This document shows positions 39,415 through 40,980 of a DNA stretch of 64,000 nucleotides, piece by piece (positions within the stretch are counted from its first letter, which is position 1; each line of letters begins with the position of its first letter). Both the position numbers and the translations under genes were made by a program. The notes under the pieces are model-generated. The model made no database searches. It saw nothing but the letters and a program-made list of their open reading frames with translations, and had not been told where the DNA came from. The stretch is from Adineta vaga (Eukaryota > Animalia > Rotifera): NCBI GenBank assembly GCA_021613535.1, contig CP075492.1:10788001-10852000 (forward strand). The letters are read 5' to 3'.

Positions 39415-39930
39415 CTATCGAGTAGTTATAGTTTGTTTAGCTAATATATCTCGAATTTCACATAAAATTTTCACTTGATCATTTGTTTCAATTTGTACTA
39501 ATTCGTCACCTTCTGCATTTTCTTTCTTTCGTGTAGCAAGTTTATGTACTTTATTAATGGCTTTAATGACAAAGAATAATGCAAATGCTATAATTAATAA
39601 AGAGATTATCGTTTGAATAAATTTGCCATAACGAATGACCACAGGTGGTTGTTTTTTATAGACGAAATTCTGCATTTTAATCGTTAAATTAACAAAATCA
39701 ACGCCACCTAAAACTAGACCTAATGGTGGAGTAATAACATCATCGACTAATGATTGAACGACATTAACAAAGGCTGTACCCAAAACGATACCAATAGCTA
39801 GATCTACCACGCTTCCACGAAGTGCAAATCTATTGAAAATAAGAATTTTTGAAATGAACAGATCAATATTAAAAACTTACGCTTTGAATTCTTTACAAAA
39901 ATTTTGACAACAACGACAGCAAGCAGCCAT
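39415..39930 (-). CDS. mscL: Large-conductance mechanosensitive channel MscL, copy 1 (exons 39930-39881 and 39829-39415)
   Basis: [64 protein letters not shown] aligns along its length with E. coli MscL ([39 protein letters not shown]). One 51-nt GT-AG intron. Confidence 0.95.
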
Positions 39931-40447
39931 ATGGAATGAATCTAAAGATTGTATATTCAAGTTTCAGATTTCATTCAATGACTACGTAATGGATGATAAG
40001 GAAAGAAAAATGTATGAACGAATATTTTAAAGGTCAATGTCAACCATTCATCAGTTGAACTAAGATTAATTGAATTATATAACACAAATTCTACTTAGCT
40101 ATTATTCTACTACAATCAACAAATATTTAGGAGATTTTAATTATATTGAATCAAGTCTTACATGCAGCTCAATCCGCTCTTTTATGTTCAATGAATAAAG
40201 AAGAAAAAAAACTACATATATTGATTTCTATCATTGTAATATATGTCCATATATTTTCTTTCTTTCTCTTTCATTCGTTCATTCGTACCATGATCGCCTA
40301 ATGTATCTTAGTTGCATATTACTCTACAAGTGGTCATATAAATACGAAAGGATGGAATAAAGTTCTGATGTAACATCAGTATATAATACAAAATTGATTC
40401 ATTTATTCAGAATAAAAAGAGAATAAATTAAAAAAATGCATTTATGT

Positions 40448-40980
40448 CTAATGTAATTCATTGGATGCATGACTTGTTGAAGTTTGTCGATATAGAATAT
40501 CTCGAATCTCACGTAAGACTTTTACTTCATCAGTGACATTATTATCAGGATTACTTTCGATTGTATCTTTTTTTCGAAGTGCTATTCGATGTAATTGATT
40601 GATACCTTTAATAACGAAAAAGAGTGCAAATGCAACAATAAATAGAGAAAGAATAGTTTGAATGAATTTGCCATAACGAATGACCACAGGTGGTTCGTTT
40701 TTGTAGACGAAATTCTTCATCTGAATCGTTAAATTAACAAAATCAACACCACCTAGAAGAAGACCCAATGGAGGTGTAATAATATCATCGACAAGTGATT
40801 GAACTACATTAGTAAAAGCAGTACCAATAATAATACCAATAGCTAAGTCTAATACATTTCCACGAAGTGCAAATCTATTCAAATGAAAAAATATATATAT
40901 GAAAAGTCTAAATGAATAATAATTACGTACGCTTTAAATTCTTTACAAAAATTGAAACAACATTGACCGATTCCCGACAT
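40448..40980 (-). CDS. mscL: Large-conductance mechanosensitive channel MscL, copy 2 (exons 40980-40931 and 40874-40448)
   Basis: [53 protein letters not shown]. A 56-nt GT-AG intron sits at the same phase-2 position as in copy 1. Confidence 0.95.

Follow-up and report, generated by a model that had tools for sequence, protein, structure and literature searches.

Here, we examined a stretch of 64,000 nt (hereafter the window) from the genomic DNA of a bdelloid rotifer, Adineta vaga, which contains two neighbouring genes for the large-conductance mechanosensitive channel MscL. The window corresponds to 10.79-10.85 Mb of contig 3 (chromosome 3, a 20-Mb contig) in a genome assembly of 100.8 Mb and six contigs. 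An initial annotation, made from the letters of the window alone, had placed two full-length mscL genes at 39415-40980 in a desiccation-tolerant, rotifer-like host and had noted in each of them a spliceosomal intron at one shared position after a 50-nt first exon. The animal is indeed a bdelloid rotifer, both genes were located exactly there on the minus strand, and the gene models and the RNA joints described below agree on the position of the introns.

Copy 1 corresponds to the public locus I4U23_014214 (protein P0045, 154 aa). The coding part of its exon 1 (39930-39881, 50 nt; supported by translation, an RNA joint and P0045) encodes a Cys-rich N-terminal extension, in which there are five Cys, and then the beginning of the S1 helix (KEFK). 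It is followed by a 51-nt intron (39880-39830, GT..AG, defined by the RNA joint) that lies in phase 2 inside the Ala17 codon, and by exon 2 (39829-39415 including the stop codon; supported by translation, Pfam, RNA contigs over 39372-39829 and identity to P0045), which encodes the end of the S1 helix, the first transmembrane helix (TM1), a loop, the second transmembrane helix (TM2), the RKK cluster and the C-terminal EIRD helix. Copy 2 corresponds to I4U23_014215 (protein P0001, 158 aa) and consists of the coding part of exon 1 (40980-40931, 50 nt; translation, RNA joint and P0001), which encodes the beginning of S1 and, ahead of it, an N-terminal extension that carries a CC..C cluster, a 56-nt GT..AG intron (40930-40875, RNA joint) that matches the intron of copy 1 in position and phase, and exon 2 (40874-40448 including the stop codon; translation, Pfam, NCBIfam and RNA contigs over 40441-40874). 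The intergenic spacer from the stop of copy 2 to the start of copy 1 (39931-40447, minus strand), which has zero RNA depth at 39963-40415 and is covered by DNA, presumably holds the 3' untranslated region of copy 2 as well as the 5' untranslated region and a putative promoter of copy 1. P0045 and P0001, both annotated as 'hypothetical protein' of Adineta vaga, are identical to the conceptual splices of copies 1 and 2, and the UniRef name for the Adineta and Rotaria proteins is 'Large-conductance mechanosensitive channel'.

To examine transcription and splicing, contigs of four public runs were mapped to positions 38000-42500, including three RNA-like runs from two studies (X1-X3) and a DNA run from a third study (X7). 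Runs X1-X3 cover exons only and their depth falls to zero in the spacers at 39963-40415 and 41020-41925, whereas X7 spans the MscL genes, introns and spacers and contains no joint. The joint 39829>39881 of copy 1 was found in X1 and X3, and the joint 40874>40931 of copy 2 in X1, X2 and X3, that is, in both RNA studies; in each case CT..AC on the plus strand reads GT..AG on the coding strand. With contigs restricted to exons and exact joints at the predicted places, both MscL genes are therefore transcribed and spliced as predicted.

The MscL pair had also been described as lying among ordinary metazoan genes (PBX and CDK8) with a host-like AT content, which was borne out in both respects. PBX homeobox exons at 36237-37092 (plus strand; Pfam PBC domain, E 4e-51) are situated beyond a TPR gene on one side of the pair. 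On the other side, the multi-exon CDK8 gene (~41970-44054, minus strand), whose exon peptides match solved CDK8 at E 1e-25 and 8e-10 and which is represented by spliced RNA contigs, is an upstream neighbour that the pair has kept in Adineta and in Rotaria alike. The GC content across both MscL genes is 0.287, within the range of the flanks (0.26-0.36), and their GC content at third codon positions (GC3) is 0.17-0.18; a GC content of 0.29-0.32 together with this GC3 is of host type. Regarding physical linkage to the flanking animal genes, the chromosome-scale contig and the independent DNA run X7 agree.

For family searches the exon-2 translations were used singly, and P0045 and P0001 were used where the full-length protein was needed. 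Against the Pfam MscL family (PF01741, curated cut-off 27.4 bits), copy 1 scored 118.6 bits (E 2.7e-34) and copy 2 125.8 bits (E 1.6e-36). Exon 2 alone also exceeded the cut-off of the TIGR00220 equivalog (71 bits), with 115.8 bits for copy 1 and 120.2 bits for copy 2, and exon 2 of copy 2 reached 143.1 bits against NCBIfam NF001843 (cut-off 142). The best solved relatives were found at E 2e-34 and 1e-31, with rotifer residue 11 aligned to their residue 3 and the alignment continuing through to the C-terminal helix; the solved entries 28oa and 9tiu we take, from their sequence, to be E. coli MscL. The exon junction at codon 17 lies inside the region homologous to E. coli MscL. As this homology continues across the junction, the intron was inserted into the transferred reading frame and exon 1 is not a borrowed host exon, consistent with the earlier suggestion that the intron was gained after transfer.

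The rotifer proteins belong to the same length class as E. coli MscL and share its S1 helix, TM1 pore motif, loop, TM2, RKK cluster and C-terminal EIRD helix, with ~45-50% identity and with R13, G14, D18, L19, A20, G22 and G26 all conserved. With an offset of eight residues, E. coli L19, A20, G22, V23 and G26 correspond to L27, A28, G30, I31 and G34 in both copies; thus both have Ile31 in place of the gate residue V23, and E. coli K31 is replaced by Asn. The reading that the gate region, the RKK cluster and the EIRD bundle are intact was confirmed by the presence of RG(N/S)VxDLAIGI, of the basic clusters RKKE and RKKD, and of the C-terminal helix (CEIRDIL, REIRDIL) in the exon-2 translations. 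In an alignment of 90 sequences, G22, A28 and G34 are invariant. Among the 29 positions of this alignment that are invariant or at least 90% conserved, copy 2 keeps all 29 and copy 1 keeps 28. The sole departure of copy 1 is at the site of E. coli N15, an Asn that is at least 90% conserved: as had been noticed, copy 1 has Ser (Ser23) at this site, and copy 2 retains Asn23. In orthologues of copy 1, position 23 is Ser in A. ricciae, Asp in A. steineri and Asn in Rotaria. At the gene level, E. coli has a single mscL, whereas the rotifer genes are nuclear, contain a spliceosomal intron and comprise six intact paralogues.

An AlphaFold2 model of copy 2 (predicted local distance difference test 83) contains helices at residues 6-20, 24-56, 85-123 and 132-155 and a hairpin at 66-83, in the order S1, TM1, loop hairpin, TM2 and C-terminal helix that characterizes the MscL architecture, for which a length of about 130-160 residues is typical. 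All significant Foldseek matches of this model are MscL structures. They are M. tuberculosis MscL (2oar) as well as archaeal and Staphylococcus MscL (4y7k, 3hzq), which share the helix-helix-hairpin-helix-helix order at a probability of 1.00 with 31-41% identity and TM-scores of 0.36-0.56. The TM-scores are low because the packing of the pentamer is not captured by a model of one isolated subunit. A complex prediction for copies 1 and 2 gave a score of 0.01 for one pair with controls not run, and carries no weight for or against heteromers.

One feature that distinguishes the rotifer proteins from E. coli MscL is the N-terminal extension of ~8 residues with a Cys cluster, which is present in all properly modelled bdelloid MscLs (CC.CC...C in copy 1, CC...C in copy 2, and comparable ones in Rotaria and the remaining paralogues) and is lacking in the E. 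coli protein. The Cys-rich extension is specific to bdelloids: among 135 representatives from outside this group, not one carries two or more Cys at its N-terminus. In the model of copy 2, the extension continues the S1 helix (6-20), and C8 and C12 share a face with F15 and F18, the counterparts of the membrane-anchoring F7 and F10 of E. coli. The N-terminal cysteines, which would be cytosolic and juxtamembrane, are probably S-acylated.

Two smaller sequence features were observed in the remainder of the proteins. The outer loop contains an N-L-T sequon (GGVDFxNLT; 40703-40711 in copy 2 and 39658-39666 in copy 1, minus strand), which is found at the same site in all A. vaga paralogues and in every bdelloid copy examined, unlike in E. 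coli MscL, and is not general in the aligned bacterial homologues. The sequon could represent a second adaptation peculiar to eukaryotes, or it may be no more than a loop motif that has been conserved. In addition, the copy 1 lineage has a Cys before E-I-R-D (LCEIRD; 39451-39453 in the window, minus strand; orthologues P0053, P0055, P0016 and P0071), a site occupied by Arg, His or Thr in the remaining paralogues that were compared and by Thr in E. coli. Such a Cys could allow disulfide formation or redox control if the bundle is pentameric.

A six-frame search of the A. vaga genome identified seven MscL loci, including two each on contigs 3, 6 and 2 and one on contig 5. Six of them are intact genes and one is a pseudogene, and all seven have the intron at one position and phase, after ...AAAGC. 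The pseudogene (L007:1394-1925 = G000:C6:5022718-5023249, plus strand) is in tandem with the intact copy of contig 6; it has TGA for the Arg of the RGN motif, reads NSAISF instead of DLAIGI and has a degraded TM2. Pairwise ratios of nonsynonymous to synonymous substitution rates (dN/dS) among the six intact copies were 0.11-0.25 over 100 codons, values that are rough because dS (0.6-1.5) is near saturation. On these ratios, all the intact copies have evolved under purifying selection.

Over the same number of codons and with the same saturation, dS within each tandem pair was 0.54-0.68, compared with 0.86-1.5 between most other pairs of loci, which hints at either independent local duplications or gene conversion between neighbours. 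The contig 2 pair and the contig 5 copy have no flanking genes in common within 10 kb on each side, only the MscL genes themselves being matched. The single paralogue on contig 5 (L003:1501-1962 = G000:C5:260701-261162) is joined in the tree by a protein of Rotaria sordida (94/82) and, less closely and on a very long branch, by the Didymodactylos protein (90/82). It differs from the other loci in its GC3 (0.34 vs 0.16-0.23), has Gly for the third Cys of the N-terminal cluster, and carries a longer C-terminal tail rich in Ala, Ser, Thr and Pro.

The history of the tandem pair could be followed in other bdelloids. Contigs of Rotaria sordida and Rotaria sp. Silwood1 (L097 and L098) contain CDK8, a copy-2-like MscL and a copy-1-like MscL on one strand, which is the order of the window read on its minus strand; CDK8 is 96% identical over a test exon, and all four Rotaria MscL genes have the 50-nt first exon and the intron at the shared position. 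The occurrence of this order in two Rotaria species implies that the pair and its link to CDK8 predate the Adineta-Rotaria split, and the tandem duplication that had been suggested is thus common to both genera. A mirrored block on contig 6, composed of a SAMD1-like gene, MscL, the MscL pseudogene and a PBX paralogue without CDK8, looks like the counterpart from an ancient genome duplication. Mirrored synteny had made the pseudogene a candidate for the whole-genome-duplication counterpart of copy 1; this was rejected by a careful phylogenetic tree of 42 rows, in which the pseudogene is the sister of the intact contig 6 copy (95/79) within an orthogroup that also holds Rotaria (99/96). Therefore, the contig 6 tandem is either a young local duplication or a product of conversion. 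The dS between copies 1 and 2 (0.68) is lower than that from either of them to the contig 6 gene (0.86 and 1.23), and for this reason the estimate leans towards a window duplication that occurred after the genome duplication.

With regard to the source of these genes, MscL has not otherwise been reported in animals, and the eukaryotes from which MscL-type channels are known comprise fungi, plants and photosynthetic protists (PMC3681921). That bdelloids take up genes by horizontal transfer is well established (PMC4632278, PMC4498783). A similarity scan over 1.84 billion cluster representatives retrieved a small number of clusters resembling bdelloid MscL with an identity of at least 62%, followed by a fall to ~53% and below. 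The best named genomes were bacteria of several phyla with 40-54% identity, including Alistipes, Pseudomonas, Enterobacter, Melioribacter and Sphingobacterium, which are scattered over Bacteroidota, Pseudomonadota, Ignavibacteriota and others. In a tree of 183 rows, all bdelloid rows (A. vaga, A. ricciae, A. steineri and five Rotaria species) and five anonymous representatives, one of which is Didymodactylos carnosus of a third bdelloid family, formed one clade with a support of 100 in the Shimodaira-Hasegawa-like approximate likelihood ratio test and a stem of 1.12 substitutions per site. The bdelloid clade was also recovered in the 42-row tree (100/100), with stem lengths of 0.8-1.1 substitutions per site over both trees. 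The closest anonymous representative, P0172, sits on a gene-dense contig of prokaryotic style. The horizontal transfer proposed in the initial annotation agrees with this placement of bdelloid MscLs as one clade beside prokaryotic sequences. The strongly supported clade together with its prokaryotic nearest relatives supports a single acquisition before the bdelloid radiation, putatively from a prokaryote-like donor, and a eukaryotic intermediate in the transfer is unlikely.

Taken together, the MscL genes are intact, expressed, spliced, conserved and under constraint. The explanation that we favour, with a probability of about 0.72, combines a single transfer, domestication, an ancient gene pair, and a role of the products as tension-gated rehydration valves with an S-acylated anchor. 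The transferred gene gained one spliceosomal intron in the Ala17 codon of the S1 helix and the Cys-rich extension of ~8 residues, its composition turned host-like, and it then multiplied to the six intact loci and one pseudogene of A. vaga. Each protein would assemble in the manner of bacterial MscL, that is, as a pentamer that forms a pore in a rotifer membrane and keeps its N- and C-termini in the cytosol. The pore would open as membrane tension nears the lytic limit and release solutes when cells swell, either during rehydration after desiccation or upon osmotic downshock. On the extended S1 helix, the N-terminal cysteines would face the membrane and are probably S-acylated, which may strengthen the lipid anchor that passes tension to the gate.

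Several points weigh against this explanation. Bacterial MscL opens near lytic tension in walled cells, and such a valve may not help animal cells, which are wall-less. Channel activity, pentameric assembly, membrane location and S-acylation are all inferred from homology, and the dN/dS values behind the case for constraint are approximate as mentioned above. The Ile that replaces the gate residue V23 is more hydrophobic, and a lowered gating threshold is not suggested by this substitution. As for origin, the sister group of the bdelloid clade is without support in both trees and a donor phylum is not singled out; the trees contain no named fungal or algal MscLs, nor were monogonont rotifers sampled, and a search for eukaryotic members among representatives with an extended N-terminus gave none with an organism name. 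On the positive side, a role in rehydration is indirectly supported by Moris et al. 2024, who listed one A. vaga MscL gene, FUN_024790, among the 260 genes over-expressed in all rehydration conditions (Table S4 of PMC10809525; log2 fold change 1.36 and false discovery rate 5e-8 at 2.5 h after desiccation and X-rays) and annotated it with 'regulation of osmotic pressure changes'. This older identifier is not mapped to any of the seven loci, so the induced gene may be neither window copy, and its expression is low (mean count 31.6).

The most serious competitor is that the proteins are functional MscL-type channels with a different task from that of emergency valves in the plasma membrane, which we consider unlikely but well worth keeping in view. 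They might serve internal membranes (endoplasmic reticulum, mitochondria or vesicles), certain cells (for example in the protonephridia or bladder, which are osmoregulatory) or eggs, or they might be tension sensors that admit ions for signalling. There is a precedent in the eukaryotic MscS-like channels, which regulate Ca2+ and cell volume in the endoplasmic reticulum or organelles (PMC9367656), the maintenance of six paralogues in separate orthogroups suggests a division of labour, and the low expression of the published paralogue would fit a restricted cell type. However, the N-terminus is short (~8 residues before S1) and lacks an organelle-targeting presequence, and one paralogue is induced after rehydration.

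Alternative sources for the genes are far less probable. It has to be considered that MscL came from another eukaryote (fungus, alga or protist), or that it is a eukaryotic gene of ancient origin which has disappeared from all the other animals; the known eukaryotic members of the family (PMC3681921), the unsupported sister group, the long stem (0.8-1.1) and the lack of any named eukaryotic MscL in the trees speak for such a source. But whether judged by score, by identity or by placement in the tree, the closest sequences come from bacteria or from contigs of prokaryotic style, are 45-54% identical over their whole length and start just 8 residues after the rotifer start, and descent by vertical inheritance would need very many losses. 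That the genes are transcribed foreign relics without channel function, or else bacterial contamination or an assembly artefact, is the least credible of the readings examined. The pseudogene on chromosome 6 shows that decay does occur, and bdelloid assemblies are rich in foreign DNA (PMC4632278), yet decay of these genes is contradicted by the intact frames in six loci with dN/dS of 0.11-0.25, by the 28 or 29 of the 29 conserved positions that are kept, and by orthologues from three families of bdelloids. The introns with spliced RNA, the host-like GC3, the CDK8/PBX context on a chromosome-scale contig, the DNA run X7 and the synteny with Rotaria exclude contamination.

Within the valve explanation, a more specific version may be put forward tentatively, which on present evidence is rather doubtful. 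It holds that the bacterial valve was rebuilt for wall-less cells, with a longer, S-acylated S1 anchor and with six paralogues or mixed pentamers that provide graded thresholds and protect syncytia at rehydration. One source of differences in threshold would be the copy 1 lineage, through its Ser or Asp at the E. coli N15 site and the Cys in its C-terminal bundle. Different gating tensions and heteropentamers of the two copies had been suggested in the initial annotation and, like the safety valve, are functional proposals. If this were true, MscL would be a functional component of animal anhydrobiosis.

Among known systems, the desiccation-responsive trehalose-6-phosphate synthase and trehalase genes of A. 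vaga (PMC4498783) resemble the MscL genes in that they are of foreign origin, have acquired introns and a composition like that of the host, have been kept across bdelloids and, as far as one MscL paralogue is concerned, are induced around desiccation and rehydration, although they encode soluble enzymes and not a family of membrane channels. The eukaryotic MscS-like channels (plant MSL, fission-yeast Msy1/Msy2) are also mechanosensitive channels of prokaryotic type that handle hypo-osmotic swelling (PMC9367656). They differ in having an unrelated heptameric fold, in being ancient in their hosts and in not being known from animals; the rotifer genes, by contrast, belong to MscL proper. No dedicated study of bdelloid MscL was found in the full-text literature searched (rotifer, bdelloid, Adineta), and MscL is not mentioned in the supplements of PMC4632278 and PMC12220480 or in the main text of the Brachionus paper PMC2667189; PMC11451251, considered as a paper on these genes, was unrelated and rejected. 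What is already public is the gene annotation in databases and one paralogue in a supplementary table of PMC10809525.

The bdelloid genes are an uncharacterised animal branch of a known channel family that was acquired by a known route, and their proposed physiological role is plausible. With them, an entire animal class has an expressed and selectively maintained MscL family with a eukaryote-specific intron, Cys-rich N-terminus and conserved loop sequon. They amount to a natural experiment in which one can see how a force-from-lipid channel that was tuned to bacteria with a wall is adapted to animal membranes. They also provide a concrete candidate for the tolerance of bdelloids to the osmotic shock of rehydration. 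On the other hand, thousands of foreign genes are already known in bdelloids and these MscL genes have already been annotated publicly, which tempers the significance of the finding.

Further neighbours of the MscL pair are a SAMD1-like gene, LHFPL, a SET-domain methyltransferase gene and a septin gene. CDK8 is single-copy in the A. vaga assembly in spite of the duplicated counterpart of its chromosomal block on contig 6, and its C-terminal exon (42250-42474, minus strand) encodes nine consecutive glutamines and, after them, a segment rich in proline. The TPR gene between PBX and MscL copy 1 (38043-39050, minus strand) consists of a single exon that encodes 335 aa with TPR_12/TPR_10 domains. 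In RNA and DNA contigs alike, this gene has numerous variants and loose ends as well as a 308-nt 'joint' that is non-canonical, which suggests that it belongs to a multi-copy repeat family whose members cross-map.

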